Of a DNA stretch of 64,000 nt, positions 5,401-50,996 are shown one piece after another. The notes beneath the pieces were generated by a model that was not told where the DNA came from, made no database searches, and saw nothing but the letters and a program-made list of their open reading frames with translations. The DNA comes from Schmidtea nova (lineage: Eukaryota): contig CM097882.1 of assembly GCA_044892505.1 (NCBI GenBank), positions 120,590,001 to 120,654,000 on the forward strand. The letters are read 5' to 3'. A program made the translations under genes and the position numbers. The stretch's first letter is position 1; the number at the start of each line of letters is the position of its first letter.

Positions 5401-5811
5401 TATATAATTTTTCCAATTCCTTCTATAGAATTAATAAAAAATATCTCTATATAGAATTTTAAAAAATGTAGCATTCCGATAAATAATTATTTACAAAAAA
5501 GTACTAAATAAAGTAACTAACACCAAGTTAAGGACAGGAAACGCAATCGTGAACCATGAATCATTTATAATCTATATATAATTCTTTTCGTGAGTCTACG
5601 TAGACGTATTCAGCATTTGCAATGAGAGAGATCTTGACATTATCCTACGGGTTCAGATTAATATTAGAGTAATATTATCAGTTGAATTGAAAACTCACAT
5701 CCTAGTTGTCATGGATCACCCTGCCCCTTCCTTACTTCTGAATTTAATATTGATGCATTTTCATTGAAATCATGTTTTGTTCTGACAATTATTTTATTAG
5801 TTTTATTTCAG

Positions 5812-7081: not shown

Positions 7082-9165
7082 AGTGAACGCATTCTAATTT
7101 TCTTTTGACTGATTTGTCAGTCCTAATAATTTTGGGTGTTTATACCATTTTGATTTTTGATTTTTGACCCCTTCCAAGTAGGCCCGTTGTGGTGTGTTTG
7201 AATTTTTTTAGTTATTTTGTAAAATTTATTACATAATTAAGAAATTCTGAAATTTTAAATTAAAGTAATCGTTAAAAATAATTTCTAAATTTAACAAAAA
7301 AAATAACTATAGAAATTACTAAGAAATAAAATTATAAATAACGATTTTTAATTTGGGATTCGTATAATTAGATTACTATGAATTTTATGAATGATAAGAA
7401 GACTATTACATGAGTACAATATTTTTGCGTCATCGAACTTGTTGATTAAATAAAATTTGTTAAATTAATTCTGTGTTATTTTGTTATTTATTTTTTGTAA
7501 AAATATATTATATAAAATATATACGCACGCACACACTTTTAACAAATAGCATTCACCCCAGCTGTCCCAAAACATGATTTTTACCGGAGTCTCTTCTGGG
7601 CTCTTCAATCTTCCTCATCAACACACACTTACTTACATTCATCACCAGTTATAACCCCAAACAAATATTACCTATCAACAACAAATTACATAGAAATTTA
7701 CACAACTATTACAATTACTATTAATAGCATTACTCTCTGTTGNNNNNNNNNNNNNNNNNNNNNNNNNNNNNNNNNNNNNNNNNNNNNNNNNNNNNNNNNN
7801 NNNNNNNNNNNNNNNNNNNNNNNNNNNNNNNNNNNNNNNNNNNNNNNNNNNNNNNNNNNNNNNNNNNNNNNNNNNNNNNNNNTCAGTCTTTCAAAATTAT
7901 GCTATCGATACACTGAACAGCAGAAAACCATTTATAAATTATGTTAATTTAAAATTATTTCAGATGTATAACATTCAAATACAATGTGCCTCCGATAATA
8001 AATATTTAAATATTTAGTATTTATTTATTTATTAAAATAAAATAACTTGTTTTAATAACAAGTTATTTTGAAGAAGGCAGTTTTTCAAATTTGTATTAAA
8101 TAAATCTTTCCAATTCTTATTTTATTTTGTAGATAGATTTTATACAATCGCTACAATTGGTGTCAGAAACGACAAAGCAATCCAAGCACCACGCACTCCA
8201 AGCACTGAACTACAAGCACTCAAAGCATCACGCACTCCAAGCACCACGCACTCCAAGCACTGAACTACAAGCACTCAAAGCATCACGCACTCCAAGCACT
8301 GAACTACAATCACTCAAAGCACCAAGCAATCCAAGCACCACGCACTCCAAGCACTGAACACCAATCACTCAAAGCACCAATCACTCAAAGTTCCACGCAA
8401 TCCAATTCATTAAAGCACCACGCACTCCAAGCACTCAAAGCACCACGCACTCCAATCATTAAACCACCAAACACTCAAATCATCACGCACTCCATTCATC
8501 AAAGCACCAAGCACTCTAATCACTCAAAGCATCACGCACTCCAATCATCAAAGCACCAAGAACTCTTATCACTCAAATCTCCACGCACTCCAATCCCTCA
8601 AAGCACTCAGAACTCAAAGCACCAAGCACTCAAATCATCACGCACTCCAATCATCAAAGCACCAAGCACTCTAATCACTCAAAGCATCACGCACTCCAAT
8701 CATCAAAGCACCAAGCACTCTAATCACTCAAAGCATCACGCACTCCAATCATCAAAGCACCAAGAACTCTAATCACTCAAATCTCCACGCACTCCAATCC
8801 CTCAAAGCACTCAGAACTCAAAGCACCAAGCACTCAAAGCACCACGCACTCCAATCATCAAAGCTCCAATCACTCAAAGCTCCACGCACTCCAATCACTC
8901 AAAGCACTCAGCACTCCACCACTGCAATGGCTCTATATACGCTCCGCGCACTTCGGCGGGGGGCCATTGTAGTGCCTCCGATAATAAATATTTAAATATT
9001 TAGTATTTATTTATTTATTAAAATAAAATAACTTGTTTTAATAACAAGTTATTTTGAAGAAGGCAGTTTTTCAAATTTGTATTAAATAAATCTTTCCAAT
9101 TCTTATTTTATTTTGTAGATAGATTTTATACAATCGCTACACTGTTATTATTATCATTATTATTA

Positions 9166-9204: not shown

Positions 9205-12200
9205 ATTATTATTATTATTACTATTATTATTATTATCCCAGCAAGTAAAATCAGTCTTTCAAAATTATGCTATCGATACACTGAACAGCAGAAAACCATT
9301 TATAAATTATGTTAATTTAAAATTATTTCAGATGTATAACATTCAAATACAATGTTTTGAAAGGTTTTTGCATGAAAAAGGAACATTCAGTGCCACTTTT
9401 TCAGTGGTTCCTTTTTCAGTGGGTTCTAATCCATTCCAGTCAACACATGATACACTTGTTCAATGAGACAAACAAAGTTATCCTTTATGTGTTTAATCAG
9501 ACGATAAATGTTACTCGTCAAACGTACCCCAATCAAAGAGCTGTTCTATACTATTGTGAAAAAATACAAGCATTATTAGAGAACAAAGACCAATCTCAGA
9601 TTTTATCTTTCCGGTAACTACGATCGAAATCGAATTTAAAAATTGTGTTAATCAAAATTAAATATTATCGGCGAGCCAGATACTCTAATCTTTGGCAATT
9701 AACCTTGGTTGAGGACAGATTTGTTCGAGTATCATATACTGATATAGACAGTTATCCACATAAATTAAATCAATCAATTCGAATCACAACCACTCACATC
9801 AAGGTGGCGAATCCAAGTAATAAAACTATATAATCCTCATCTACGGAAAATGAAATTTTGTGTGTAACTTTGTTAATAACAATTATCATCATAACAATAT
9901 TTATCATCATTCTCATATCTCTTATCATCTACAAAATTCGAATAACTGATAGATAGCCTACGAATAAATCCGAGACTCAAATACCTTGGATCGATTATGA
10001 GGAGACGTTTGTATAGTGAGATACAATTATTTTGCATGCAATTATAGTATATTAATAGTGTAGCATCTCATGACATTTTCTTTTATCAAGTTTCATATTA
10101 ATCTACACTCTTCGAAATGGGAAAATGTGTAAATTGATTTGATTGGCTAATACTAAGAAAGTGAGTTGTAGAAAAAGAGTCTATAAAATTAAAATGTGGG
10201 TATATAAGACAAATTTAAAAATCTTAAAACTTAAAACAAATTTTAAACTGAACAAATTTTAAAGAATTAAGAAAGTTTTAAATTAAACCGGTAATTTTAT
10301 ATTTTTTTATTTATACCGCTACCTACTTAAACATTATCCTATGGATACTCCATCTTAGTCCTAGCGTCAAAATTAAATTAAATCAAATTTAAATTATAAA
10401 CGTTTAGTAAAAATGGAATAGATACAATTGGCCAAGGAAACTTAAGACAGTTACATAAAGATGATGAGAAATCATGCCGACCAAAGGAAATTCCAGATGA
10501 CCAACAATTTACAAATCCCAAATTACCTAAGGGTGGATGATTGAAAAATGTGAATTCAATTGATCAACAACAACAGAAGATAAAAATTTCAAATAACAAA
10601 TGAATTAAAATTATCAAATGAGGAAGAATACTATGTCCATGTAATCAAAGGGACGGTAGAAATACTAGATGAAAATGGACAAATATGGTGGGAAATTTAA
10701 AAACTTACTTCATGTAAAATCAAGGAGCTATCAATCGGGAAAATACTGCGAGATGCAAACGAGGATGCCACAATTGTAGTGGAAGCAAGAACAAAAATCG
10801 AAAATCATGACGTACCCAGCAAGGAGCCAATACAGAAAGAAAGTCCTGAACTCCTACAAATAACAAAGGAAATGTTGAAGAGAAAATTATCGTTTATTAT
10901 GAAGGAAATGGATATAGAAGAAATCCGCAGTATGATATTATTCATTGATGCCGAATATGGGAGCACCGATACAGGAAAGATGATTCCCTTGACAGTGGCC
11001 ATCATGAATTATCATGAGAAAATTGTAAAAAAATGTCTTCTTGGCCACCATAGGAATACTCAAACATTTTAGCATAATCATCCATGGAATAACAGAGGTG
11101 GCCAGTCGAAATCAAAATGATCAGTATGAAGAAATGAAGGAGATCCAAAAACTTGCAATCGGGAAAATGCTAATAGGACATGACCTACATGCAGAGTTGC
11201 AATTCTTAGGAATATGGATCAACCATCTTTATGGCACCCGGGATCTGGCTACAGTTCAAGCCTTACAATTGAGAGGAGTAACAATAAGAGGAGAATGGTT
11301 CAAACTCAAAACCGTAATAAAGGAACTATATGGAGAAGAAATGCAAACGGGTATACATTCAGCTTTGGAGGATGCTAAAAGCATTCGAAAGATATATCTG
11401 GGACTCGAAAATCTTTGGATCGGGGATGTATCAATACCCAAGATAGGGCCATCGAGAAATATCCGTTACAAGAATATCAAGCTCTACAACATAGGGAATC
11501 GACATCCGAAATTCCCATCTCAGAAAGAAATTTAATAATCTCAGATGAGACAGACATGGAAGTGGAGGAAACTGATGCGATGGCGGAAATGATGAATCAA
11601 AAGTTAAAATGAGCAACGGAAACTAATTTGGAGAAAATGAAAGAGAATGTAGAAATTATTGAAGCCATTAAATCGGCGAGAATTCAATTATCGATGGAAT
11701 GTGGCCCAATGGAACGAAAGAAGAATCGCAAAAAGAAAGCTAAAACATCTAATATCGACTTTGGAGAAACACTGGCCATCAACGATGTAGTATATGAAAA
11801 AGAAGAAACGATTATCAGATATCAACATGGAGCAAAACGGCTGGAGATCAAAATGGACTAAAATTATATTAATTATATATGTGATTGTTGAGTAATTGTT
11901 AGGTAGAACTGTTGTGTTTTTAATAGAAATGTTAATTAGATGTTAGTTAGGAATGTTGTGTTTTTAATATAAATGTTATGTAACAGAAATATGTCAAGGC
12001 CCGAAAGAGTCTCCCAAAGAAAATGAATTGTGGGGACAATTGGGGTGCAGGTTATATGTCTATTGTATGCGTGTAATCACAATAAAATAACAACAATAAA
12101 ATAACAAAATTTGATTATGATATTATAAAAGTTTTATTGTTTAAACTTATTTAAATCCAAAACCAACAATTACAATACAATTACTTTATAATGACCTCAA

Positions 12201-15200
12201 CAATTTTCTTTGTAGTAATTATTTTCAGGAATAGGATCTTCTCTAATAATTGTTAATTGTTTCGATAGTAGTTTCGAGTGTAGTTAATTGTTTCTGTAAT
12301 TCTTTTATTTGTATCTTTAGATATATTTGGAAAACTTGAAATAAATAATAAAGTTGCTTATTTCAATAAATTTGGATGACTTGAAATATGACTTGAAATA
12401 TGACTTGAAAATATGAAATATGACTTGAAATATGACTTGAAATATGACTTGAAATATGACTTGAAATATCTTGATATCTTAGAGATTTTTTTTTAAATAA
12501 AGAATTTCAATTATTTGTGATTTGGCTTACTATAGCATTTGCTATAGCAAGTCAAATTCAAATTTTGAATTGAAATAATAATAAAAAATAAAAATAATGA
12601 AAATAATAATAAAAATAAAATTGACATACACACGAAATTATGGTGGGGGAACCGAACTATCATTTTCGACACTAACCATAAAATTGCTAAAAAAAAAACA
12701 AATTATCATACCAGTTTTTGGGTTCACAACACAACTTCCCCCTTTAAAATCGGAGGTTAACATTTGATTGAAAGAGAAAAACACTCACAGAATCACACCA
12801 AATTTACATTTTTAACGATAACAGTAACTTGAAACCCTTTTTTTGTTATGTTTCGTTTAGTTTTTTTTTAAGTTACAATTTAACACAAAAATTACATATT
12901 TACAAAGAAAAATAAAAGATCTGTACAAATAGCTATGTTGTGCCTGTGTTTTGCTTATGTATGTTTGTGCTTTTTACTTGAGGCATTTTCTGTAGTGTTT
13001 TTTTCTTGGGGTAGATTGTGTGAGGCGTTGTGTGTAATTTGATTGTTTTAATGATAGGGTTTTAATCTGCGTATGTTGATTCTAACTTTTCTATTTTTTA
13101 TCAATAATGTGCCCACGTTCTTGTTTAGTTCGAGAAGTTTGTAAGGACCTTCATATTTTGATTCAAAACCACTGGTAAAAGGTTTTTTTATTAAAACCTA
13201 ATCGACCATTAAATTTGTTTTTGTTTGTTTGCTGTCTTTGTCTGTGATGACTTCTTTTGTTTCGTTTTGGGTTGTTTGTGTTCTGTTCTTGTAAGTTTTA
13301 TCTGGGTTTTTGTAGTTATTTATTATGTTTGGGAGATTTGTTGAATGTCCGAAAGTTAATTGGCTTGGGCTTTTGTTGTTTAAGGATGAAGGGTTGTTTC
13401 GTAGACCAATTAAAATTTCTGCCAGTTTTTCTAACCAGTTCCTATCATTTGCTTTGGCTCTAATTGCCTGTTTTAAAGATCTATGTAGTCTTTCGACTTT
13501 GCCGTTGGACTGTTGTTGGACTGTTGGACTGTTGGACTGTTGTTCTGATTTTTTTTATTTTATATTTTTTGCAGTCCTTTGAATAAATCTGATTCGAATT
13601 GTCTGTCTTGATCACTGATGATTGTTTTTGGGTATCCATATCTTGCAAACCAGTTTAGTTCTATGTTTTCGCAGATAGTTTTGGCTGTAATTTCTTTTAT
13701 TGGTATTGCTTCGAACCAGTTTGTTTTGCGGTCAATCGTTGTCAACAGGTATCTGTAGTTGTTGTTTGGTGGAAGTGGTCCTACTAAATCCACGTGTACT
13801 GTCTCGAATGGTTCGGATTTGGGAAAATTTACTTTTGTTGTTTTGAATCTTTTTGTTGGTTTATTTTTCTGGCAGTGAAAACATGAGTTGACAAATTCTT
13901 TGGTGTCTTTCCTCATGTTTGGCCATACGACTTTAGTGTACATGAGTTAGTATGTAGCTTTTATTCCTGGGTGGTATATGTTGTGAAATTGGTTGATGAG
14001 TTCCATTCTGTGTTCATCAGGTACTATTAGTCTTATGTTGTTTTCGTTTGAGACATCGTACCAAATTCAATCAATCTCTTTTAGTATTAATGAGTTGATT
14101 TTTGGAAAGTTTTTTATTACTCTTTCTTGCTTGTTTCTCATTGTTTCTTGATTCACTATTGGGATCATGCTGATCGCGTTTGTTTCTGTTTCAATTAACG
14201 AAAGGGTATCTGCGCATATGTTTGCTGCTCCTGCTATATATTTTATTTCGAAATTGAATTGTGAAATGTAGTTTAACTGTCTTATTTGTCTTGGTGACGG
14301 TAATTTTATTTTGATTGCGTTTAGTAGAGGTTTGTGGTCTGTATATACCTCAAATTCTTTCCCTTCTAAGAGGTATTGAAAGTGTTTTATTGTATTGTGT
14401 ACCGCCAGCAGTTCCCTGTCAAAAGTGGAATATCGCATTTGGTGAGCTTTGAGTTTTTTTGAAAAAAATGCAATGGGTCTTTTTTCGTTATTTTTTTCTT
14501 GGTATATTGTACCTCCCATTGCTGTTCCAGAGCAATCAGTGCTGAGGATGTATGTTAGGTTTGGGTCTGGATAGTTTAATAGACTTGTGTTGGATAGGTT
14601 TGTTTTTGCTTTTTCAAAAACACTTTCTAGTTGTTTGTTCCAATTGATTTTGACGTTTCTTTTGTTGTTGTTTAGATCGTTTAGTGGTGCGAGTATTTCG
14701 CTACACTTTGGGATGTGTTTATGGTAAAAGTTTATCATTCCCATAAAACGTCTTAATTCTCTTGTTGTTTTATGAAGATGGAATTCCTTGATGGCCTTTA
14801 TTTTGTCGTCTTAAGGTCTTGTTTTATTTTCGTTTAGGATATGTCCCAAATACTTGACTTCGTGTCTTAGGAATTCGCATTTCTTAATATTTATTTTGAG
14901 ATCGTTATTGTTGAGGGTGTTTAGGATTTCCTTAATGTCCTGAATATGTTCGATTTTATTTGTTTATGCGATTAGGAGGTCGTCCAGATATGCAACCGTA
15001 TTCCTGTGGTTTCTCAGGATTTGGTCCATGAACCTTTGGAAAGTGGCGGCTGCGTTTTTCGAACCGAATGGCATTCGGTTGTATTCATATAATCCGATCG
15101 GCGCTATTATTGCAGATTTTTTGATGTCTTCTTCACGCACCGGAATTTGGTGGTATGCTTTTTGTAAGTCAATTTTAGTGAAGTAATTTGGATTATGTAT

Positions 15201-18200
15201 CCTGTTGATTATGTCGTTGATTATAGGTATGGGGTATTTGTCGGGTATTGTGATATTGTTCAAGGCTCTATAATCTCCGCATGCTCTCCATTCGCCATTT
15301 GCTTTTTCTTTTAGCATGAGCGCGGATGACCATTTTGAGTTGGAATGTTGAATTATGTTGTTTTCCAATAAATCGTCGAAAATTTCTTTGGTTATTGTGA
15401 GTTTTTTATTGTCCAGTTACCTTACTTTAGCGTGGACTGGGTTGCCATTTGTCATGATTGCGTGTTCTGTTATGCATTTGTTTGTGGTTTCTATTGATAG
15501 TTTATCTGTGATTGTAGGGTAGTTTTTTAGTAGGTCTTTGATTTCTTTTGGTAAAATATTGTTTGGGTTTGGGTTTTCGCAATTTGTTGTATTTTTGGTT
15601 TGTAAGCCTTTCGGTTGTGTTTTGATTGTGTTTGCGGTTATTACTCCGATATCACAGTTTGGTTGGTTGTTTAAGTTTTTGTAATTGGTTTTGTTGTTTA
15701 GGTATTTTTCTGTTTCGGAGTTATTTTGTAAAATTCTTTTTTTTCGGCAGTCTACAAGCAAATTGTATTTCGTTAAGAAATCGGCTCCTAAGGTTGCCTG
15801 TTTCACGTCAGCGATGATGAATTCCCAATTGTAGTTGGTTTTGTTTATGTTAATAGTTAATTGTTGTTTGCCGTAAGTTTTGATGTTGCTGCCATTTGCT
15901 GCGCACAGGTTGTAGTTTTCTTCTTTTAAGGATTGGAATAAATAACTAGGTAACAAACTAACTATTAAACCAGAATCAACGAGGAAATTTATTTTTTTGC
16001 TTTGTACCGTGAATGTTTCGTAGTCGCCAAATGTCGGTGCTGTCATTAGCGACTTTAATTGTTTTCCGGATTTTTGTGTTGGAAAGTACAAGGGGTGTTA
16101 CACTTAAAAGCTTTTTCACCGAATATATTATGGTTGTAAAACCAGTTTTGGTTTTGTTTGTTGTTGTTGTTTGCATTGTTTGAATTGTTGTAATGGTTGT
16201 TGAAGTTCGGTTTTTGTTCTGAGTAATTGTTTTGGTAATTTTGTTTGTACTGGTTTTTCCTTGCTTCTCTCGTTTGTGCTTCTTGCAGATCATTTCAAAG
16301 GGTTTTGTTCTCTGTTATGACTTTGTCGACTTTTTTTATTAATGAATTCAGTATTTTGTTAGTTTCATTGTTGGGGTTCTCTTGTTCTTGAATGATTTCT
16401 CGTCTGTTTTGTCCCGGGTTTTGGTTTCTGTATGTTTTACAGATTGTTGGGTATATCTCATCGTTTATTTTATCAGCTATTTCGGCAATCGTGTCTAGGT
16501 TTGTACAGTTGTTTGCGGCCAAAATGCGTCTGATTTCTTGTGGCATTGCCCTCATAAATAGGTCCTTTACGAATTCGCTTGATCCCGAGCTTGTTATTTT
16601 GGGTTGTAGGAATTCCAGTTTTGTTTTAAGGTGCCTTAAAAATTCGCTAGGTTTGTCGTTTCCTAGCTGAATGTCTTTTAGGCAAGATTTTAATACTTCC
16701 TTCTTGTTTATCTTATTTCTATTTAATAAGGTTGAGTACAATGTTTCGAAGGGGTCGTTATTTTTTCTATTTTTTCTATCCTGTCGCCGATTTCGTTTAG
16801 TATGTTGCTTGGCAATGCGGCGATTATGTGGGCGCATAGTGTCTTTGATGACTTGATTCCCGATAGAGTTAATGTTAGCTTGGCGAACTCTAACCATTTT
16901 TGAGGGGTTCCGTTTTCGTCGGTAAAAAAATTGGGAATGTTTGCCTTAGGGTTGATGATTGAGTTTATGGTGCTGTGCTCAAATGGTGTTTGTGAATTGT
17001 TTGAGTTTGTTTGGTTCGATGCCATTATTGTATTTTTGTTGTTTGTTTATGTGAAAGAAAATGAGATTGATTGAAGGATATAGCCTACTGTGTTCGACTA
17101 ACAAAGTCAACTATCCTTTATAGCTCTATCTATAGCTATTCTAAAAGGCGTAGTGATTGAAATAACAAAAATCGGTGAGTGTGTGTTGTGTTTTTTGCTT
17201 CTAACACCACTTTGTTGAGTAATTGTTAGGTAGAACTGTTGTGTTTTTAATAGAAATGTTAATTAGATGTTAGTTAGGAATGTTGTGTTTTTAATATAAA
17301 TGTTATGTAACAGAAATATGTCAAGGCCCGAAAGAGTCTCCCAAAGAAAATGAATTGTGGGGACAATTGGGGTGCAGGTTATATGTCTATTGTATGCGTG
17401 TAATCACAATAAAATAACAACAATAAAATAACAAAATTTGATTATGATATTATAAAAGTTTTATTGTTTAAACTTATTTAAATCCAAAACCAACAATTAC
17501 AATACAATTACTTTATAATGACCTCAACAATTTTCTTTGTAGTAATTATTTTCAGGAATAGGATCTTCTCTAATAATTGTTAATTGTTTCGATAGCTAGC
17601 AGTTTCTGTAGTTAATAGTGTAGTTAATTGTTTCTGTAATTTTTTTATTTGTATCTTTAGATATATTTGGAAGACTTGAAATAAATTATAAAGTTGCTTA
17701 TTTCAATAAATTTGGATGATTTGAAATATCTTGAAATATGACTTGAAATATGACTTGAAAATATGAAATATGACTTGAAAATATGAAATATGACTTGAAA
17801 TATGACTTGAAATATCTTGATATCTTAGAGATTTTTTTTTAAATAATCAATTTCAATTATTTGTGATTTGGCTTACTATAGCATTTGCTATAGCAAGCCA
17901 AATTCAAATTTTGAATTGAAATAATAATAAAAAATAAAAATAATGAAAATAATAATAAAAATAAAATTGACATTCACACGAAATAATGGGAGGGAATTGA
18001 ACTATCATTTTCGACACTAACCATAAAATTGCCAAATAAAAAAAACAAATTATCATACCAGTTGTTGGGTTCACAACAGTGATTATTTATAAATAAATAT
18101 TGCAATTCAGTCTCAGTTCATTAAATTGGGGCCCCACCGGTCAAACCCCATAACAAAAATAAATAAAACATAAATACCGAATAAATAAAATTTAGAATCT

Positions 18201-19453
18201 TAAAATTTAAATAAAAACCAACAACTTCCAATCATTGGGGTTACACTTCCCTGGGCAGCGATTGAAAGTTGCCAGTTATTATTACTATATTCAGCGTAGA
18301 GTATGATCATTATAAATATTATATCAAATGAATAAAATTTAGAACTAAATAAAAACCAGCAACTCCCAACCACTTGGGTTACACTTCCTTTAGCAGCGAT
18401 TGAAAGTGGCCAGTAATTATTACTATATTCAGTTTAAAGTACTTTTCATTATAAATATTATAACAAATCATATTATTATTGTTGTTATTATATCGTTGTA
18501 ATAATATTAGGACGATAAAAGAGCATTATCGTTGATGTCATTAATAGTAAGACAACAAAAAAAAGTAATAAAATAAATAAAATAAAGACTGTCAAATTGA
18601 ATAAATAATAAAATGAATCATTAATTTAAAATATAAGACAAAATTATTATTAATATGGAGTAATAAATAAGATGAATTAAAAAGAATAACCAAGACAATT
18701 TTCGTTTTTACTTTCAATTTCAACATTACCATATAATATCAGAACCATCATTACGATGAGGAGGTTCATCATTCCAAGGGTATATTATCAACATTATTTC
18801 ATTCGGACGTATCATTACAATTATTCAAAATTTCAATTATAATCATTGTTATTATTACTAGTATCATTATTATAACTATATTGTTGTGACTATAATAGAA
18901 ATGACAAGTCACAATATTATTATTGGCATAGTAAAAGCATCGTTGTGAAAATAACTTCGATGTTCACACTTTATTAGTAGCATTTTACATTTTAATTCTA
19001 GAAAATAAAAGCACTTATTTCTAAAATTTATTTCTAAAAAATTTCTAAACTTTTTTTAAATTTAATACAAAAAAATATATGTAACCGAAAGGTATCAATA
19101 AGGCAAGTCAATAAAATAAATAACAATAAAATTTTTATTGTTCAACTGAAATATCTGCCTTAGTAAAATACGATAAGGTATTNNNNNNNNNNNNNNNNNN
19201 NNNNNNNNNNNNNNNNNNNNNNNNNNNNNNNNNNNNNNNNNNNNNNNNNNNNNNNNNNNNNNNNNNNNNNNNNNNNNNNNNNNNNNNNNNNNNNNNNNNN
19301 NNNNNNNNNNNNNNNNNNNNNNNNNNNNNNNNNNNNNNNNNNNNNNNNNNNNNNNNNNNNNNACTATAGATTAAAATTTTGATCTATAGTCATTATGAGA
19401 ATTATTGATAATAATAATAAAAAAAGATCAAAGGTGAAAAAAGATAATTATGA

Positions 19454-21880: not shown

Positions 21881-22149
21881 GTTATTATTATTTTTATTTT
21901 TATGTTATTTTAATAGTAATAATAATTATTGTTGTTGTTATTATCATTATTAGTTATAAGTGTAATTATTAGTATTATTATTATTAATATTACTATTAAT
22001 ATTATTATTATTAATACTGTTATACTTACTATTGCTAATATTATTATCACTAGTATTATCACTGTAAGGAGTTCCAAAACTCCTTTTAAATTAAAAATAA
22101 TTTAATTAATTAATTTAACGAGTAACATTTTAGATATTTTAGATTAATA

Positions 22150-22229
<80 letters not shown>

Positions 22230-23448
22230 CAATATCCTCATTAATATTAGAATTATAAATGCCTCAGTGTTTTAATATTCAGAATTAAACGAAAACATTT
22301 TGAAAGTGTGATAAAAATTTAATAAATATTATTGAAGAAGAGTTGAATTTAATGGCTTCTAACATGGCGACCACGACCACGGATCTTTTAATAAGCAGAC
22401 TGCTTCCTGGAAAATTCCACAAGGGTGATAATCTTGAAGATTTTATCAAAGATTGTCAGAGAATTTTCAGCGTTACGAAGACTTCTATCAAAATGCAACT
22501 AATTTTGACCACTACTCTTTTGGATAGATCTTTAATGGAGGATTATGAAGCTGCAGAAGGAAAAACGATTGAAGAGAAACTTTGTGGTGCTTTTTCAAAG
22601 CCAACTTCATTAATATAAGATTTAAAAGAAGCTTTAAGTTATGAACAAGGGTCTGATTCAGCCGAAATATTTATAGAGAAAATTAAAAAAGTAACGAAAA
22701 AAGTAAATGCACACAAATGGGATGAAGAAGAGATAGAAAAATGTCTTTTAATAAGCTGTTCAAGAGATAAAGAAGTTGAAATGAAAGATAAAAAAACTGC
22801 CGATGAAATTAAGTCAACAATCAAGAAATTAGAAAAAGTTGACAAAATTATGGGCCAAATTAATGTGTTGAAGACTTCTTCAGTTACATTCAACAACAGA
22901 AATTATGGAGATGCTGCTCAAAGAGGACTCGTAAATGGAAACAATACCGTGAAGCAAAGAAATCAGAATAAACGATATGTTGAATGCTGGACATGCAACA
23001 AAACGGGTCACATTAGTAGAGAATTTCAAATGAAAAAAGAACCCAGTGCTTTGCATGTGGAGTAGAAGGGCAAGTACGTCGAGAATGTCCAACAATTCAA
23101 TGTCAAAGATGTCAATTGCGTGGACACAAAGAAAATGATTGTTACACCAACTTAGAAAGAAGAAGATTTGGATTTAATCAGAATGAAGGAAACCATAATT
23201 ACTATCCAAATCGATCAATGAAATATCAATAGAGGAATCAGCACCAGCGAAAAACAGTAACAGCTATTGAAACTAATGATGAAATTATGCCAATGGACTA
23301 TTCGGGTGATTCTGAGGACAAATGTGATGACGCCCAGCACCCAAAAGTACACGCTTCGACATGGGAGGCAATGATCGGAGCAATTTATTAGGTAATTTTG
23401 ATGTTAGTGTAAATATTGGCCATATTTTTAATAATGATATAAATAATT

Positions 23449-23507
<59 letters not shown>

Positions 23508-26500
23508 TAAAACCTTTATCTAATATTTATTAGTAGTAATGTACTTAATTTTAGTAATTTTTTTAATGCTGACCAGACTTTATTAAATAATAATATTAAA
23601 AATTTTTAAAATCAAAAAGATAATAAATTTAAAGAAACAGAATTTAGTAAGGAAATAATAGCAGAAAAAGTTTATAAGTTCTTAAAAAAATTAGAGAATA
23701 CAGAGTGAAATGATAAAATATGGATGAATGAAATAATGGTTAATTCAAATTTTAAGGAGAAGCAAAATATATTCACTGACGAAGAATGGGAAGAGTTACA
23801 ATTGACATATAATAAAATTCAAGGTAGACCGAGTACAACTCTTGAAATTCAGGGCCATAAAATGGAAAGTTTGTTAGATACGGGAGCTAGAGTTAATGTT
23901 ATGACTAAAGCAGTTGTGGATAAATTAGAAAATGTTGAAATAATAAGGACGAACGATAAATTAAGATGTTGCAAATGATAGCAAACTGGAAACAGTAGGA
24001 AAGATACAAATTGATGTTATAATTGGTAATATAGCAAGAAAAGTAACATTTATTGTAGTTACAAATGTTGTCCCAGATATAATTGGAGGAGTGGAATTGC
24101 AGAAACAGTTTGGACTAGAATTAAGATATATAGAGAGTAAATGTGAAAGATCGAATGATTTTATATGTGAAATAAAAGCGAAATTTGGAAGAAATATTAC
24201 AAATACTGAAAGATTACAGAAAACAATAGAAACTTTAAATTTATACGAGAATAATAAGCTGTTAGAAATTGTAAAAAATATATAAATGTTTTTATGACAG
24301 ATAAGTGGGATATTGGATGTACGGATTTAATTCAACATAAAATTATTACAAAAGGTGAACCAATAATGATAAAGCCGAATAGACAGCCTATCAATTTAGA
24401 GGAGAAAATAAATAATGCAATAAAAAATTTAGAAAATAATGATATCATAAGGAAATGTAACTCGCCTTGGAATACACCTTTAGTATGCGTGTGGAAAAAA
24501 GAGAAAAAAGATATTAGACTTTGTTTAGACTTTAGGCAATTGAATAAAATTACCGAAAGACAAGCGTTTCCAATGCGAACGTTGAAGAAATATTAGATAC
24601 ACTACATGGATCTAAATACTTTAGTTCTATAGATCTCGGGAACGCTTATTATCAAGTAAGATTGGATATTGAATATCAAGAAAATACAGCTTTTCTACTA
24701 AACAAGGCCAATTTTGTTTTAATCGAAGGCCATTTGGTATTGCAGCTGCGCCAGGTACATTTCAAGAATTAATGACAAAAGTATTAAAAGATCTAAATAA
24801 AGAAGGGGTAATGGTGTATTTAGATGATATTTTGATTTTTACAAAAACTATAGAGGAACACTACAAGACTGTCGAAAGAGTGTTAGAGAAAATATTGGAG
24901 GCAAAATTAAAAATTAATCCTGAAAAGTGTCAGTTATTAAAAAATGAAGTTAAATTCTTAGGTCACGTTATAAACAGCCAAGGAATAAATACGGATAAAA
25001 GTAAAATTGAAGCGATCCAGTCATTTCAAAAACCAAAATGAATATAAAATTTGAGGAGTTTTTTGGGTATATGTAATTACTATCGCAGATTTATTAAGGA
25101 TTATGCAAAGAAATCAAGAATCTTAGAAAGTATATGTGGCAATAGCAATGAAAAAATGATTTGGACTGAGGAATGTGAAAAAGCCTTTGAAGAAATGAAA
25201 ATAGCATTAACAACAGCACCGGTTCTTGTATTCCCAGATTTCAGGAAGGAATTTATATTAGATACAGACGCAAGTTTTGATACGATTGGGGCCGTTTTAT
25301 CGCAAACTGATGAATGGGGATACGAGCATGTTGTAGCATATGGATCACATGTAATGGGCTCACACGAAAGAGGGTATTGCATTACACTAAAGGAACTTTT
25401 GGCTATTTACTATTTTTGTCGTCATTTCAATCATTATTTATATGGTAAACGATTTGTCTTACGCACTGATCATAAAGCGATTACTTTTATGTTAACGACA
25501 AAAAAGCCAATAACAGCACAATTCCAAACATGGATAAATTATTTAAGTAGTTTGGACATAAAAATGGAGTTCAGAAAAGGTGCTGCGCATACTAATGCAG
25601 ATATGCTTTCTAGAAATATCTGTGGGAAATGTGTACAATGTGCAATGGAGCATGAAAATCCAAAATCAGGAAAATTAAAAACTAGGTTGTTAACTTTGAT
25701 GACAGAAAATAACGGAGATGAATGGCAAAAGGATAGTGCAGAGATACAAAATATAAAAGATAGAATTAATAGGAATGAAAAGGATAAATTTTATTTAAAA
25801 AATAATATAGTCTACACAAATAAAGACAAAATATGGATACCAGAAATTAAAAGACGAGAAATGATAAAGAAAACACATTTGTTATTATGTCATGCAGGGG
25901 TAGAAAAAGTAATGAAATACATTCAGAACAATTTTGATATGTTAGACTTGGCAAAAGAAATAAAAGACGACTATCTCTACATGTGAATCATGCCAGAAAA
26001 ACAAAGTTATGACCACAAAGTTTAAAGAAGAAACCAAAGTCATTCAAGCTTCTGAACCTTTTGAAAAAATATACATGGACATCTATGGACCTTTAAGAGA
26101 AGCATTCAAGGGAGATAAATATATTTGTGCTATAATTGATCATTACAGTAAATATATTTCACTAACTGCTATTAGTAAACAGGATGAAAAAACAATAGGA
26201 AAAGTTTTGTTACATAAATGGATACTTAAATTTGGGGCACCTAAAGAATTACATGTAGATTGTGGAAAGAATTTCGAAGCAAATAGCATTAAAGAACTGG
26301 AAAAACAGCAGGTATAGAGTTAATATTTTCAAGTCAGTATCACCATAATACCAATGGTTTAGTTGAAAGACTGTTTCGAACTATTAGAGATTATATTAAC
26401 TCATCATTAAATGATGGAATAAAAGAAAATTGGGCAGAATTATTGCCTGATATAGAATACACTTTAAATGAGACAGCTTAGAAAACTACTGGAGTTAGCC

Positions 26501-29500
26501 CAGCTGAAATTATTTTTGGAAGAAAGATTAATAGATTGCAATGGCATGTTAATAATAAAATTAATAGAGAAGACATTACGCAGAGATTAGAAGACAAAAG
26601 ACAGGAAAAGGAAGTCAAAACAAAAAGAGAATTAGAAATTGGAGAAAGAGTGTTAGTAAAAAACGAAATTCGAAATAAAGACCACGAGAGGTATGAAGGT
26701 CCATATACAGTAAAAAAACAAATTCATGAAAGAAGTTACTTATTAGAAGACAAGAATGGGAAGACTATAGTCAGAAATATTGAAAGGATTAAACATTTTA
26801 AAGAAGAGGGATGTAAGGAGTTCCAAAACTCCTTTTAAATTAAAAATAATTTAATTAATTAATTTAACGAGTAATATTTTAGATATTTTAGATTAATATA
26901 ATTTTATATATATATGACCAATATCCTCATTAGTATTAGAATTATAAATGTCTCAGTGTTTTAATATTCAGAATTAAACGAAGACATTTTGAAAGTGTGA
27001 TAAAAATTTAATAAATATTATGGAAGAAGAGTTGAATTTAATTGCTTCTAACAATCACTATTATAAATATTATTACTATTGGTCGCGCCCGCTTATTAAA
27101 ATATTTTTAAAATTAATTAAATAAAAATAAAATAGTAAAAGGCGGGCTTGATTGCTGTGAGAGATTTTGGAGCGAGCCTGGAAGCCGTTAGACGGTCTTA
27201 TCAATAACTCTATAATTAATTTGTTAAAATGTCATGTAAAGGAGAATCCATGCCTAGTATCAATGAATCAGACAATGAAGAAGAAGACAACTTATCTATC
27301 AGTGAGGAATTTTCCACTTCTGATTATTCTTCGTTAAATCGACTGAAAAATTCAACTCTCACTAAAACAGTCTGTGAGACGATGGAACATAAAGAGGAAA
27401 TCTTCAACAAAGCATCAACATTAAAATCTATACATTGTGTACAAAATGAAAATGATACCGACAATTCCAATGATAGCAATTCAAATAATAGCGGGCTTTC
27501 ACGAGAATCATTAGAAAGTGATAAAGAAGATTACACTAGTCACATTTGTTCTGATAATTTCCACTATCAATGCAACAGTAGTACTTTGGAAAATCAATCA
27601 ACAATAATTGAGACCGAACATTCAGTTATAAGCGACATAATTCTATTAAATGAATTACAGGAATTTTCTGATCAAATAAAAAAACTTTAATTAATGAATT
27701 TATTGAAGATTAATATCGGTTGATTTTTAAAAAAACTTTTCAGAATAATTGATTTGTTTGTCTGTGTCAGGGAATTTTTAAATTATTTGGGCGAACTTTG
27801 AAAATTTAATTATTTTGCTTAGTGTGGAATTTTGGATTTGTTTTACTGTATTAATTGTTTATTATTTAGTGGCAGATTTAACTTTTAATTTAAATAATTG
27901 CTGAGTGGGATTTCGATTTATAGAATTGTTTCGGTTTCGGTTCTTTTTGAATTGATGAAAAAATTATCGAGTTTTTGGAATTAATTGAATTATTTTGGGT
28001 ATGTTGATTTAAAAAAGGGAATTTGAGTTTCGAATTCGTTTAATGAATTTTTGGGAAGAATGGAATTTTGAATTTTGCTTTCGTTTCGTGTACATTTGGA
28101 AATAAACTTTGGAATTTGATTTATTGTAATTGGTGGATTTTGATTTAAATTAAATGGAATTTCAATTTTTCGACTGCATTTAAAACGATTGCGTTGGATG
28201 GATTACTTTCTGTTGGTGTTCGAGATAATGATTGTGGCGTAGTTGCTACACAAAGAAAAGTCCCAGATAAAATGAAGGAAAAGAGTTCAGCTACAAGATT
28301 ATTTACCATAACTGAAAGTACTGGTTGCGTTAGGACCGGAATGATTCATGATTGCGGATCGCAAGTATGCCGTGCACAAGTGGAAGCCACGATTTAAATG
28401 CGAAATGTCCTGTGACATGATTTGTCGATGTTCTGCCGAAATTAATCAATTGTACACTCAATCAGCTGCAATGATGCCATTAGGCTGTTCAATGATCGCA
28501 TTTTCTTGTGATAAGGAGATGGATAAGCCACTGTTATTCAAAACCGATCCCAGTGGATTTGTAGCTGGTCGTCGAGCTGTTGCGGTCGGTGGAAAACAGT
28601 TGGAAACTAAAAGCTATAAGGAAAAGAAGCTTCGTAAAAATAAAGAAATCAATCGGAGCTGGATGCGACGAACCAACTGTCTTTATTATTATTAATAGTG
28701 TTACTACTAATACTACATCATCATTATTATACTTATGTCATTGTTATTACTATCATTGTAGTTACTATTATTATTATCCTTATTATTACAATTATTGGTG
28801 ATATTATCATCACCATTATTATTATATGATCATTGTCAGGATTTATGATAGAATATATTTATATATGTAGATTCGAGGACGAATCTTAAAAAAAGAGGGG
28901 AGATATGTTGGGGTTGTTAAAATTTACAGAAAATAAATATTAAATAGCACAATTCAAAAAAAATACAAAAAATTGGAAAAATAATAATTAATGTGAAAAA
29001 ATTAATTAAAAATTAAAAAAAATCAAAATAAAGTTTGAGCGGGGGAAACTGGTATGGGAGGATGCCAAATGATGAGACGAATTTTAATATGGGTATATAA
29101 AAATAAAAAAAGGTCCCCAGAAAGAAATATTTAGGAAATACAAATTAATTAAAATAATTAATTACTCTATAGGAAACCCGAGCTACTTGGGAACCCGAGC
29201 TAATGGGAAACTCGAGCTAGTAGGAAACCCGAGCGATATGGGAAACCCGGGGCATCAGTAAATTGATTAATTGAAATTAATGGAAAAATTGAAGGGTGCC
29301 CCGGGGAAAGAAGCCGCAAACCCATTTAGCGGCAACTCCTAAATTAATTTTGTAATTGACAGATCCATTAAGGTGTGACAGGAACAATCAAAAAAAAACA
29401 CTATAAAAGGCAAGGCAAAATTTCAGTACTCGCCAGTTGGTCTAAGCCAGTTTGTCGAGGCCAGTTGGTCGAAGAAAAATCTAAAAGAGTTAAACGAGGA

Positions 29501-32500
29501 ATCTGCAATTGGAAAAGGAGGCTGAAACGTTAATAACTTTTAAAGTATTGATCGTTCAATTTCCTGCGTACCAGAGTGCAGATAGTATTGGAACTTTCTG
29601 TGGTATTGTTGAAAATAAAGTTTACTGTGTTGGGTCTAATTTGTTTTGTGAACGAAAGAACACCGGAGTCAGATTCCAACCAACTTCTNNNNNNNNNNNN
29701 NNNNNNNNNNNNNNNNNNNNNNNNNNNNNNNNNNNNNNNNNNNNNNNNNNNNNNNNNNNNNNNNNNNNNNNNNNNNNNNNNNNNNNNNNNNNNNNNNNNN
29801 NNNNNNNNNNNNNNNNNNNNNNNNNNNNNNNNNNNNNNNNNNNNNNNNNNNNNNNNNNNNNNNNNNNNNNNNNNNNNNNNNNNNNNNNNNNNNNNNNNNN
29901 NNNNNNNNNNNNNNNNNNNAAATCAGTAGACCGTGCCCATTGGGCGCAAAAATGGATATATACTTATTTATATATGTATATATAAAGATTCGAGGTCGAA
30001 TCTAAATTAAAGGGGAGAGGTATGTTGGGTTTTAGCAAAAATTAGTCAAATACAAAAGCAAAAACCATAAAAACTTAATAAAAATCGATAAAGTATAACA
30101 TTTTAAAAATTAATTAAAATTTATAAAAATTTGAAAACAGAGAATGAGCGGGAATTAAGAATTAATTGGCTAATGGGAAACCCGAGCTAATGGAGAACCT
30201 GAAACTATGGACAATCCGAATAGTGTAGGAAGCCCGGATGAGCAATATGACAGGTAATTATTCCAAAAAATTAACTTTTGAGGGTACCTGAAGAGCGTAC
30301 CGACAGATAGAAAATNNNNNNNNNNNNNNNNNNNNNNNNNNNNNNNNNNNNNNNNNNNNNNNNNNNNNNNNNNNNNNNNNNNNNNNNNNNNNNNNNNNNN
30401 NNNNNNNNNNNNNNNNNNNNNNNNNNNNNNNNNNNNNNNNNNNNNNNNNNNNNNNNNNNNNNNNNNNNNNNNNNNNNNNNNNNNNNNNNNNNNNNNNNNN
30501 NNNNNNNNNNNNNNNNNNNNNNNNNNTATTGTGGTGATTATTACGATAGTTACGAATTCGTTTCGATAAATGAAACAAACATTAACAAATGACACTATTT
30601 TTTTGTAATTTCATTTGTATAAATCATCATTATTATTATTATAATTATTGTTATGAATGGTAACCCCCCTTTTTTATTTTTGTTATTATTGTTATTATTA
30701 TTTTTGATTTTTAATTCGAATAAATACCAAATAAATTCCTATAGTAAACTAATTACTATAGGAATTTAAAAAAAAAAATAATCAATAACAAAATAGATAA
30801 ATTTATTAACAAATGATGGAAAAAATGAAAAGAAGATTCTAGAAGATCCTATATTTTAAAGATTCTAGTAAATAACAAATCAAGGAATTTCGAACTTAAA
30901 TTAAAAAAATAACTATAGAAAAGTTTGGAATAACTTACAGAAGAAACAATCTAAAACCATCTGAAATTAAAGAAGTAATAAAAAGTATTTTATGTATAAT
31001 CATAGTATACGTGAATAGAGGTTTATTTGTGATTTTTTTGCTGTTGGTTAGAATAAAAGTATTTGTACTAATTTTTCTATTTTTTATTTGTAAATATTAT
31101 AATTACACACACAAATAAAACATAACAAGCACCCCAGCTGTTACGATACACTTTTACTGGTGACTCGGCTGGGTTCAACAGACTTCCTGATAAACATAAT
31201 ACAATATAAAATTATAATTACTCATAACAATTGGGAATTTACCATAGCATACTTCTACATAAATATCCCGTCTATACCAGTATAAACAAAAATAACAACT
31301 GTTTATAATAACCTACAAAAAGCANNNNNNNNNNNNNNNNNNNNNNNNNNNNNNNNNNNNNNNNNNNNNNNNNNNNNNNNNNNNNNNNNNNNNNNNNNNN
31401 NNNNNNNNNNNNNNNNNNNNNNNNNNNNNNNNNNNNNNNNNNNNNNNNNNNNNNNNNNNNNNNNNNNNNNNNNNNNNNNNNNNNNNNNNNNNNNNNNNNN
31501 NNNNNNNNNNGACCCCCAGAAAGAAATAATAAAAAAATATAAATTAATTAAAATAATTAATTGCTAATAGGAAACCCGAGTGATGTGGGAAACCTGGGCA
31601 TCAACAAAATCATTTAATTATCCAAAAAAATTGGATGAGCAAAGGATGCCCGGGGAAAACCACAAACCCAGTTTCAGCAAAATTTAATTAGGCATCGGCA
31701 AAACCAATCTAATTATTTTATTTTGATAGATCCAATTAAGACGACAGGATGAAAAGAACAAGGCACAATATAAACTTAGAGTAAATGGCCGATATTGCCA
31801 GTTGGTCGAAGAAAAATCTAAAGAATTGAGTGCAGAAATTAAAGAAAAAAGGAAGCACAAACGGTAATTGAAAGTTATAGAGTATCGATTGATCAATTTT
31901 CTCTGCGTACCAGAAAGGTAGATCTCCCATTGGGTCTTCTACCTTAACATAAGAGTGCAGACGAATATTGTACCTTTCTGTGATTTAGATTGTTGTGATT
32001 GAATTGAAAAATAAAAATTATTGTGTTGGGTCTAATTTATTTTGTGAACGAAAGAACACATGAGTCAGATACCAACCGACTACTTATTAATAACCCAACA
32101 AACCTGTCTCGTGTTTTTGTACTACTATGTGTCTTTTTGAAACGTATCTACCTCGTACAAACAGGATTGGGTGTACTAAATAATTTCTGCAATTAAAAGG
32201 TAATGTAAATAATAATTTCAGATTTTGACAACTACTTCTGATACGAAAAAGGTAAAGAGGAATTATTTTATGTTTTAATGATGGTGACGGGAATTTTCTA
32301 TTATTATAAATATTAGCTGTGACACTTCTGCAGGTATAGCATTATTTTTGCTTGCCATATATTGCAATATGAATCTGATTATCAACCAAACTACTGAGTA
32401 ATATTGGCAATGGGCTTTCTTGAAAATTAACATGTATGATTTATGATTGTTTGCATAAGTTTAATTATTCTTTTTGTTCAATGACGGTCAATTCAATGGA

Positions 32501-38500: not shown

Positions 38501-41500
38501 CTGATTTATTATATAAAATTAAATTTTTTAATAAATAAAACTCCGAAAACAACTCAATAGTCACGCCTATTAGAAGTACGACATTCCAACCTAATATTTA
38601 ATCATTATTTTCTCTTATTTTTGCCATTGATTTTTTCATTTCTATTTCAGAAATTTAAATTTTTTAAAAAGACTAGATAAAATATTTTATTATTTAAACG
38701 TACACGAAATTTCGTCACATACTTTTTGGAAAAAAAATTGATCTAGTCTTTAAAAAATAAAAAAAATTATTAAGGAGACATAATTCTATGTATTCGTAAT
38801 TAAATACAGTGAAGCGTTTGGGATGTCAAAAGTCATATACACCTAATTCTGTTTTTACAAGATAGATACGTTTCTAAAAAAATCGTGTAAAAAAAAAGAT
38901 ATTGGCTGAATGGAAAAATAGTATTGAAAAAATATTGAAAATGGTGTTAAAACAAAGCAATTCGTGTAAAAAGAGAGAAAAAAAATCTTTTTAATTCGTG
39001 TTAAATCAAATTCGTGTAAAAACAATTCGTGTAAAAACAGAATTAGGTGTATATCGAAATGAATCTCAAGCTGTTAATTTGTAAATGATTTCTAAAGAAT
39101 ACTGTATCAAAATTATCCCACTGCATTATAAGATATACAAATATTTGATGGGCACTTTTGTAGTGACTTCACATTCAGAATATTATAATTTTGTTGTTTA
39201 AATAAGTTGGACAATGAGTAAAATTAGTAATCGTGTTAGATAACAGACTTATCGAGTGAATTTGCTGAAGTTTAGTGCAGAGGTTCTCAACCTGTGTATC
39301 GTGAAAATTGCCGAAGATATTTTTTTCTCAAATAGCTGACGGAAATTTATTTTGTTGAAATTGCTTTTAAAATACTAATGTTTATATTTTTTTATAAAGT
39401 ATAGTTTAACTCAGTGTTTCCCAAAGTGTGTTCCGCGGAACCCTGGGGTTCCGTGGACTGATAGCAGGGGTTCCGTGGACTGATAGCAGGGGTTCCGTGG
39501 ACTGATAGCAGGGGTTCCGCGAACTTTTTGTAAATAAATAATTTATAAAAAAAGATTTATAAATAAAGATTAATAAATAATATTCTTATTATACTTCTAC
39601 GAAAACGAAATATCGTAATAGATTGAATTGCTCGGCAGATATGCGCATCCAATTATCAACAATAAAACCAGATATAACAAGGATTTGCAAGGAAAAAAAC
39701 AACAACACTGTTCATACTAATAACATTCATAAGTTTAACTTTTTTTATATTAATCAACAATCGCATGAATTTATTTTATTATTTGTATTATTCTTATTTT
39801 TTTAATAAATACTATAATTTTCTGTATACTATAGCTCTTATTAATTTTCCCGATATTAAAATTTTATGATTTTTGTAAATAGGGTTCCATCAAAAATTTG
39901 AAATCAAAAAGGGTGTCGCGGTGAAAAAACTTTGGGAAATGTTGGTTTAACTAGATTTATTCAAAAACAGTAACTGTTAAAATAATATTAGAATCAATTC
40001 TTGTTTCAATAAAATTTGTTTTGGAAAGTCGCTAGAATAAGTTAACCTTTTCCGAGCGTTAAGGCTCGAAAGTGACTAAAATGCTTCTTTTAGACTTGGG
40101 AGCGATATTCTTGCTTATAAGGCTCGTTAAAGACTAGAATCTTACGTCCGCCTTATGGATACGTGTTCATATGCTTCTTATTGCCCTTCCTAAATAATTT
40201 AATAGCCGCTCACAAAAGGTTAAGTTTATCCACTAGATAAAAAATTGAAAAAATGTGGTCTAATGGAATAATAATTATTTATGCATTGCAATTGATATTT
40301 TATCACTAAATATAGTTATATTAGTGTTTCTTGATCCACACTCTGACACAACGAAAAGAATATGGACAATAAAGCTTTTAATTACAATTAAATTGAAATG
40401 AATGAAAAATATGATCATGTATTACCTCGCGTAGATAAGTTAGACACATTTATACTCTTGATAGGGTTCCATTGATTCTCATGCAGATGAACGAATAAAA
40501 CCAAATCCTAGCATAATGTAATTGTAGCATATGGTGGTTCAAACCGCAATAAGATAGTTTCTCTGGAGTCCCTGTAATTGCCTGTATGATCAAGTATTTT
40601 GGTTTGACTGCCCAGCAGCAACAATAGTTTTATTATTAAATATTATCCACTAATAAAAATTTATGTTTTTTTTATTCAGGTAAAGGGATCAAACATGAAT
40701 TTACTGGGAGAAACTCAAGAAGAAGACCGCAAACTAATTGCTGAGCTGATATGGTCAAAAATGCAAATATTTTGTCGTCCAAATATTCCGTTGGTTCTTT
40801 TAATATTGCTAACTCATCATGAATGTTCCATCATTTTAGTAAAGCCGAAAGCTTACATGTGATGAATCGTCAAAATGAATCTCCAGTCAACCAATCAAAT
40901 CCTCCTGCTAGCGCATCAACAACCAATATTACTTCTCAGATTGGTAGCAGACTGCCTTCACAAATGTCAACATCGGGAATATCGCATGATTATACTGTTG
41001 CGCCGTCTACATCGGCAACTTTTACACAGCAACCATTGACAACAATGGCAACTCGCAGTCAGAATTTCACAGATAATATTAGTAAATCCAATATTGGTCA
41101 CACATCAAGCTTGCCAGCTGCACCGCCCATTACTGCAACATCCAACTCTATGAGTTCAATCAGTGGAATGAATCCGAGTGAGCCAATGAGGTAGATATAA
41201 TTATATAATCACTGTTAATGAATAAATTGTGAATGCAATCCCATAAATAGGTCTAGGGATAATAACCTGTTTCAAACATTTAACAAATACGTGGCGCGCC
41301 CAATAAGTCGTGAGACTAAAATAGAAAGACTTAAGATATCAACACAAAACTTTGTATTTAGAACAAGCATGGGAAATAGGCATCATTTCTCAAAATAATT
41401 TCCTTCTGCACTGACACAATTTTCCCAGCGAATAACGAGGTTTTCGAAGGCATTTTTGAAGAATTCTGGAGGCTTTTCTCCCAGAAAACTCTCCACGGCT

Positions 41501-50490: not shown

Positions 50491-50996
50491 GGTGTAATTA
50501 CTAGTTACTCGCCACAGAGTAATGTTGGTATTGTAATTAATGGTTGAGCGCTATTTCAGAAATATAATTGACTGAGTATTTACGAGTTCAAAAACTGTCA
50601 ATATAAGATTTGTGCTCATTTTTACTTTATGGTTTCTTTATTTTTAAATACTTAATCATGAGCTATATTTGCTGAAAAAATCAAATTTGATGCTAATTTA
50701 GCAAAATATTACTGAAAAAATTATTGAAAAAATTCTTTATTATCAATAAGAAAATTATTAAATATTTCAATAGTAATAAATATTTTATTTTCAAACCATA
50801 CTTCAAACTCGTACTAATAAAGAAATAATAATAATGTTGATTGTTAATGCTATATTTTTATTATTGTTATTGTTATTGTTATTATTGTCATTATTATTAT
50901 TGGTCGCGCCCGCTCTTAAAATATTTTTAAAAATTAATTAAGTAATAATTATTTGGGTGCTTGATCGCTGTGAGAGATTGTGGAGCGAGCCTGGAA

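Follow-up and report, generated by a model that had tools for sequence, protein, structure and literature searches.

We describe two composite insertions, copy A (27080 to about 28680) and copy B (50901 to about 52901), both on the plus strand of a 64,000-nucleotide stretch of the Schmidtea nova genome (assembly GCA_044892505.1, contig CM097882.1, positions 120,590,001 to 120,654,000 of the forward strand; hereafter the window, whose own numbering is used throughout), which suggest a retroposon family that takes up host messages. Both copies present their modules in the same order: a 5' arm, a first cargo, a linker, a second cargo and a 3' arm. The arms and the linker are shared between the copies, and three of the four cargos they bracket are of host origin. 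All four cargos lie in the sense orientation of the element, the second cargo of each copy joins the 3' arm in frame, both copies sit in a microsatellite context, and neither is bounded by terminal inverted repeats (TIRs) or long terminal repeats (LTRs). Our favoured explanation, to which we give about even chances, is that both copies belong to a non-autonomous retroposon, dependent on a long interspersed nuclear element (LINE), that is aimed at (TTA)n and carries segments of host mRNAs.

The shared arms and the linker

The 5' arm (27224 being its last position in copy A, where it starts at 27080, and 50901 to 51034 in copy B, as aligned to copy A; plus strand) comprises about 140 nt common to both copies. 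It opens with the GC-rich TGGTCGCGCCCGC, the first 13 nt of the arm being identical between the copies, and continues through an AT-rich loop, which has diverged between them and is closed by a complementary GC stretch (GCGGGC in copy A), into a core that in copy A ends in CTCTATAATTAATTT. Across the 79 aligned positions of this core there are only 3 mismatches (96% identity), and a 29-mer of the arm, GGAGCGAGCCTGGAAGCCGTTAGACGGTC, occurs exactly twice in the window, at 27169 and 50982, where shuffles predict zero occurrences. The arm is predicted to fold as hairpins flanking a single-stranded stretch; no covariation was seen in a consensus fold of the two available sequences. The 3' arm (28636 to 28680 in copy A and 52857 to 52901 in copy B, plus strand) is about 45 nt long and 88% identical between the copies, with a 22-mer that again occurs exactly twice in the window (28655 and 52876; zero predicted by shuffles). 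It carries an AATAAA about 35 nt before its end and a terminal hairpin that is weak in both copies (-6.5 to -9 kcal/mol, z about -0.4 to -1.0). The match between the arms of the two copies, which had been proposed from an earlier reading of the sequence alone (the sequence-only reading), is thereby confirmed.

Between the two cargos lies a third shared module, which that reading had not recognized: a C-poor linker at 27691 to 28172 in copy A (5% C) and 51841 to 52227 in copy B (6% C), both on the plus strand. Segments of 300 nt with such a composition (below 7% C with G above 14%) are rare across the 64 kb, and two of the others adjoin copy A. Motifs including TGGAATTT and TTGATTTAA are 25- to 40-fold enriched in both linkers over the remaining window. 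The alignment of one linker against the other scores 63, compared with 41 and 54 for the best among 276 background segments (z = 3.1 against dinucleotide shuffles), and resolves into three collinear blocks of local similarity (p = 0.008, 0.001 and 0.0025), the overall identity being about 55-62%. Sharing motifs and blocks at so low an identity, the two linkers are homologous and fast-evolving, and the element can be described as a three-part chassis with two slots. We also considered the linker as the 3' UTR (untranslated region) of cargo 1, and rejected this since the two linkers share the same motifs and collinear blocks.

Divergence is thus spread unevenly over the modules: the 5' core is 96% identical, the 3' arm 88%, the linker about 55-62%, and the cargos are unrelated. 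This gradient argues for long-separated lineages in which the ends were kept by function, and does not resemble the outcome of a single recent duplication. It bears equally on the possibility, in our view quite unlikely, that we are dealing with two one-off chimeric retrocopies or with locally duplicated and rearranged DNA, the arms being pieces of one abundant RNA, cellular or of an element, that was repeatedly co-copied, much like U6 in the U6-L1 chimeras. Retrocopies with a small RNA at their 5' end are known (PMC2104539, PMC4476161), the hairpins of the 5' arm around a single-stranded stretch would suit such an origin, and there are but two copies. Yet one-off events would have to account for three separate modules kept in order in both copies, for a contrast of 96% against about 60% identity that implies long independent evolution under constraint, for arms without any Rfam match, and for the same microsatellite targeting on both occasions.

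The four cargos

Cargo 1 of copy A (27229 to 27690, plus strand) is an intact open reading frame (ORF) of 153 codons, whose ATG lies 4 nt past the 5' arm. Its product is acidic (isoelectric point 4.3; 31 D+E against 11 K+R residues) and rich in S, N, D and E; no frame as long appeared in 2000 shuffles of its bases. The acidic ORF of 153 residues in the sequence-only reading holds. No relative was found in Pfam, in PDB, or in a word-indexed protein search confined to proteins of 84-268 residues.

Cargo 2 of copy A (28173 to 28635, plus strand) matches the Pfam Proteasome family and is an internal fragment of PSMA6, covering residues about 28-186 of about 246, with about 60 C-terminal residues missing. 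As for the other broken cargo gene, its frame pieces were searched separately, each on its own, and for each of the two pieces the top ten matches among solved structures were all proteasome alpha type-6 (E = 1e-19 and 3e-21). This cargo had been described as an intronless PSMA6 piece; the identity stands, as does the lack of any interruption by non-coding DNA, while the single frame that the description implied has to be given up: the fragment is split over two reading frames by one frame change, with no stop within either piece. The similarity to PSMA6, even with a query that runs on through the arm, still stops at EKKLRK(N), at 28636-28641, precisely where the similarity between the arms of copies A and B begins, as had been proposed. 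The A-rich microhomology that the sequence-only reading took there as a sign of template switching is not established: PSMA6 orthologues carry a lysine run at this very point, and in an A-rich stretch a few shared A's at the junction are to be expected by chance anyway.

Both cargos of copy B were newly identified here. Cargo 1 (51036 to 51840, plus strand) is a near-complete ERI1-type gene with a SAP domain and a 3'-5' exonuclease domain, which starts at its ATG and follows human ERI1 collinearly as far as residue about 313 of 349; at least three frame changes and one in-frame stop interrupt its reading. Cargo 2 (52228 to 52856, plus strand) is an intact piece of a UTP20-like gene, which aligns without gaps and at 70% identity to residues 267-457 of a protein of 735 residues (P0121) and is 40% identical to a protein of 1295 residues with a UTP20_N domain. 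The similarity begins a few codons before the first ATG, which makes this cargo an internal fragment, and ends about 27 nt before the 3' arm. A word-indexed search with the 216-residue ORF of this copy returned nothing within its length limits; it was a full HMMER scan that assigned it to part of a longer UTP20-like protein. Neither of the two intact cargo ORFs matched any record in an exact look-up. The two first cargos show no similarity to each other, and the four cargos derive from unrelated families. Hence the claim that two copies carry four unrelated cargos is upheld, with three of the four demonstrably like host genes (PSMA6, ERI1-type and UTP20-like). Neither a reverse transcriptase nor a restriction-like endonuclease is among them.

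Junctions, slots and a possibly coding tail

All four cargos are without introns and share the sense orientation of the element (a one in sixteen outcome if orientation were random). In both copies an ATG directly following the 5' arm coincides with the start of slot 1 or lies no more than 6 nt from it, and in both the cargo of slot 2, in copy A its downstream part, reads in frame into the 3' arm. The outer junctions, from arm to cargo 1 and from cargo 2 to arm, are identical in the two copies. Together with the in-frame fusion of slot 2 this suggests fixed slots, whether through selection, a hotspot or a shared ancestor.

The 3' arm itself can be read as coding in the frame of cargo 2, as KNKE[I/S]NRSWMRR[T/S]N, which is open in both copies (the reading in copy B being KNKESNRSWMRRSN). 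Of the six differences across these 14 codons four are synonymous, a seventh falling in the next codon; in the other two frames the synonymous differences number one of six and two of seven, and one of these frames holds stops. By our own binomial estimate, which assumes about 25% synonymous sites, the excess in the cargo frame has a p of about 0.04. These figures hint that the tail is, or until recently was, coding. The stop codon of the joint cargo-2/arm frame sits in the flanking repeat. In copy B the UTP20-like fragment and the arm tail (52257-52907) form a fully open frame of 216-226 codons next to an ERI1-type neighbour with at least four breaks. This unequal decay hints either at cargos of different ages, with the later arrival of one, or at selection on the fusion.

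The different decay of the two cargos also bears on an unlikely alternative, namely that the chassis is akin to a SINE (short interspersed nuclear element) and that the four cargos are processed retrocopies which landed later and in place, at two AT-rich hotspots, the cargo never moving with the chassis. The unequal breakage within copy B (at least four breaks in cargo 1, none in cargo 2) would then reflect different times of arrival. The same history would suit the single occurrence of every composite, the way in which the tracts around the copies draw other insertions, such as a Ty3/gypsy-type element in the tract of copy A, and the 8-mer TAATTAAT, which occurs in copy A both where the 5' arm ends and where the linker starts, thus bracketing cargo 1, and which could be a duplication or a microhomology. 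For this 8-mer match we estimate a chance of roughly 0.1 in AT-rich sequence. Such a history, however, requires four independent insertions into exactly two slots, all in sense; cargo 2 has neither surrounding A-rich or TTA tails nor clear duplications; and the slot-2 inserts of both copies are in frame with the arm.

Ends, target sites and a possible route of capture

Tracts of the (TTA)n type, which make up only about 2% of the window, border each copy on either side, and the 3' end of each copy abuts such a tract directly. Copy A lies between a TTA-like remnant (27054 to 27079), itself situated between the copy and an upstream LTR element with its ATCAC duplication, and an imperfect (TTA)n tract (28681 to 28830), which holds the stop of the cargo-2/arm frame. 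Copy B lies between an imperfect (TTA/TTG)n tract (50830 to 50900) and an imperfect (TTA/TAG)n tract (52902 to 52945); all four tracts are read on the plus strand.

Alignments of the element ends as TIRs are no better than those of shuffles (p = 0.72 and 0.15), no terminal direct repeats or flanking LTRs bound either copy, and the termini, which read TGGTCG... and ...CCAA, are not those of a Helitron, for which a 5' TC, a 3' CTRR, a GC-rich hairpin close to the 3' end and insertion between A and T are expected. A search of the whole window against Rfam at gathering score gave no match, and in one of 27000-28800, with E up to 10 allowed, the sole matches were miRNA and snoRNA-like ones on the AT-rich hairpin, attributable to chance, with no ribozyme among them. 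Rfam likewise found no ribozyme like that of hepatitis delta virus (HDV) at the 5' end, a search which a divergent ribozyme could escape, and ARAGORN found no tRNA as a possible head. The HDV-like, hammerhead, twister, small nuclear RNA (snRNA) and spliced-leader RNA candidates for the 5' arm were dropped after these empty searches, twister after a visual comparison with PMC8501958 as well. Copy A contains an Sm-site-like AGAUUUUGGAG, which was rejected, its counterpart in copy B being AGAUUGUGGAG, and a panhandle complementarity of the element ends is not significant.

We consider it very unlikely that the copies are instead Pack-type cut-and-paste DNA transposons, for example PIF/Harbinger-like elements with a TTA/TAA duplication, which captured gene fragments at the DNA level. 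The TTA-type flanks would be compatible with a 3-bp TWA duplication, the ends read TGG...CCA, gene capture by TIR elements has been reported in animals (PMC8277862), and, the host genes here being intron-poor, a capture from DNA would look intronless too. On the other side stand the absence of significant TIRs (p = 0.72 and 0.15), the sense orientation of all four cargos, and the placing of slot 1 at an ATG and of slot 2 in frame with a coding-looking tail. No transposase of the appropriate type is associated with the copies, a mariner remnant at 41383-42456 being unrelated.

Taken together, the conserved 5' end, the short and conserved 3' end next to a simple repeat, the insertion into a microsatellite and the sense, intron-free host sequence are consistent with a non-autonomous element that a site-specific LINE copies. 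Briefly, we advance the following plausible mechanism. The chassis would consist of the 5' arm, the C-poor linker rich in TGGAATTT, and the 3' arm with its last 14 codons coding. The elements would be copied into (TTA)n microsatellites by a non-LTR (LINE-type) reverse transcriptase whose gene lies elsewhere in the genome. Slot 1 would receive a 5'-complete coding sequence from its own ATG, and slot 2 an internal fragment whose frame continues into the tail encoded by the arm. The likeliest route of capture would be the switching or jumping of the reverse transcriptase between the RNA of the element and host mRNAs. Movement through RNA, the LINE partner and template switching as the means of capture are what we infer from the above features.

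Several observations weigh against this explanation and account for the restraint with which we hold it. In the first place, the absence of introns from the cargos is weak evidence, because the host gene NSUN5 (46301-48998, minus strand) itself has at least 358 codons free of introns: at 46301-47533 these align without gaps to the nearest relative (tblastn, 64% identity). A cathepsin-L-like peptidase domain at 58388-59107 on the minus strand likewise runs through 238 uninterrupted codons. Next, template switches that were independent and random do not predict identical outer junctions. The proposal of the sequence-only reading that capture took place at the RNA level is therefore retained in part: four sense cargos without introns fit it, but intron absence carries little weight here and random switching alone would not be expected to yield the same outer junctions twice. 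Further, no non-LTR reverse transcriptase is found among the larger ORFs of the window, the only reverse transcriptases there being those of two Ty3/gypsy-type LTR elements; the arms show no known RNA family (ribozyme or snRNA) or tRNA-like head; and no empty chassis, 5'-truncated copy or partner LINE sharing the 3' arm was seen in the window. Target-site duplications are unreadable inside the microsatellite flanks, where any 3-nt match is trivial, and no parents of the acidic ORF and the PSMA6 piece were found. Finally, two copies are known, from which it cannot be derived how, or how often, capture happens, and each composite of arm and cargo was seen once, so that a joint movement of arms and cargo as a unit is at this stage hypothetical. 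The window holds no further copies, an arm 22-mer is absent from metagenome, prokaryote-genome and viral DNA collections, and the arm strings do not occur in the literature searched. Accordingly, the suggestion that cargo exchange is routine is not established.

The more far-reaching proposition, that a fixed two-slot chassis repeatedly takes up host mRNA and, as an RNA-level counterpart of the Pack-MULEs, makes and spreads new chimeric frames, we regard as possible if rather doubtful. We are just as tentative about the roles that the slots would have in such a chassis, slot 1 offering the captured sequence the start position of the element and slot 2 fusing it to an element-encoded C-terminal peptide. 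Were a chassis with slots to prove true, this would be an animal retroposon whose regular life cycle includes the shuttling and fusing of host coding sequence, and would bear on the origin of retrocopies and chimeric genes, on the recognition of non-autonomous elements by their partner enzymes, and on the reasons for which some microsatellites turn into nests of insertion. Were it not to be confirmed, the two loci would be unusual chimeric insertions of local interest only.

Genomic neighbourhood

The window is AT-rich animal DNA (about 30% GC), dense in transposons. Its (TTA)n-like tracts are strand-biased, with 15 on the plus strand against 2 on the minus strand, both of the latter within LTRs, and several tracts adjoin the ends of repeat families. 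One Ty3/gypsy-type LTR element (22064-27053, plus strand), with several broken ORFs, lies in the TTA-like tract of copy A. Its LTRs (22064-22364 and 26812-27053) share about 93% identity, the 5' one carrying a (TA)n expansion. The 3' LTR ends 26 nt before copy A; since the element has its own 5-bp duplication, ATCAC, this LTR is a neighbour and not a part of copy A. A second Ty3/gypsy-type element (11885-17994), coding on the minus strand for protease, reverse transcriptase and RNase H, has long terminal repeats that are 94-100% identical, and a palindromic segment of its LTR is found again some 700 nt downstream of copy B, at 53638-53732 (88%).

Among the other repeats are perfect direct repeats of 170 nt (7986-8155 and 8972-9141) bracketing a C/A-rich satellite with 39- and 49-nt periods and a GC skew of -0.52; an unclassified family of about 1.2 kb with members at 4412-5417, 54893-56018 and 60705-61752, one of them inverted, at 79-90% identity; and the mariner-type transposase remnants at 41383-42456 on the minus strand, in which helix-turn-helix domains and a partial DDE domain lie in separate ORFs. 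An ORF at 1770-2282 on the plus strand matches ribosomal protein L6e and may be a retrocopy. As for NSUN5, its N-terminal domains lie about 1 kb from the main block; the best match to this gene is 72% identical (Logan run SRR33002330), and the named matches, from molluscs, cnidarians and flatworms, are 47% identical or lower. Seven runs of N interrupt the window (1288-1425, 4016-4163, 7743-7882, 19183-19362, 29689-29919, 30316-30526 and 31325-31510). None falls inside copy A or copy B, the nearest being that at 29689-29919, 1 kb downstream of copy A.

Comparison with known systems

Among known elements, those of the Dong/R4 clade of LINEs offer a close parallel. Dong inserts into TAA repeats, and its published 5' junction carries (TAA)n (PMC3774820). 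Like Dong of Bombyx mori and its relatives, copies A and B are inserted in a TAA/TTA trinucleotide microsatellite, have neither LTRs nor TIRs, and possess a precise, conserved 5' end. In contrast to these LINEs, the copies have no ORF for a reverse transcriptase or an endonuclease and no detected HDV-like ribozyme, and their open frame reaches the very 3' end. Moreover, they have (TTA)n on the sense strand, opposite to the (TAA)n of Dong. The R2 SIDEs (short internally deleted elements), and RIME, which derives from ingi in trypanosomes, are internally deleted LINE derivatives keeping only the ends. Copies A and B are similarly non-autonomous and have kept the ends required in cis, 5' as well as 3'; unlike in these simple deletions, their interior is replaced by host gene sequence, placed in two slots on either side of a linker that was kept.

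The reverse transcriptases of LINEs are also known to produce chimeric retrocopies by double template jumps (PMC2104539). Like the resulting chimeras, such as U6-L1 and the tripartite pseudogene of Magnaporthe (PMC2104539), the copies join several RNAs head to tail, in one orientation and with no tails between them. The template-jump chimeras are unique events without a recurring chassis, whereas in copies A and B different cargos sit between the same three modules, with identical outer junctions; and unlike in the small-RNA chimeras, the 5' arm matches no known small RNA in Rfam and no tRNA.

With the gene capture of Pack-MULEs, Pack-TIR elements and Helitrons the copies have in common a short mobile chassis with fragments of several unrelated host genes. 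Those systems are marked by TIRs or Helitron termini, by capture at the DNA level, by introns that are often retained and by a mixed orientation of the fragments, none of which is seen in copies A and B. Retroelement RNAs, too, pick up host exons, as in the exon-trapping of SVA, the 5' and 3' transduction of LINEs, and the capture of oncogenes by retroviruses. Copies A and B resemble these cases in that the RNA of a retroelement would take host exons along. They differ in that transduced sequence lies outside the element or replaces one of its ends, whereas here neither end has been lost and a middle module survives, and no LTRs are present.

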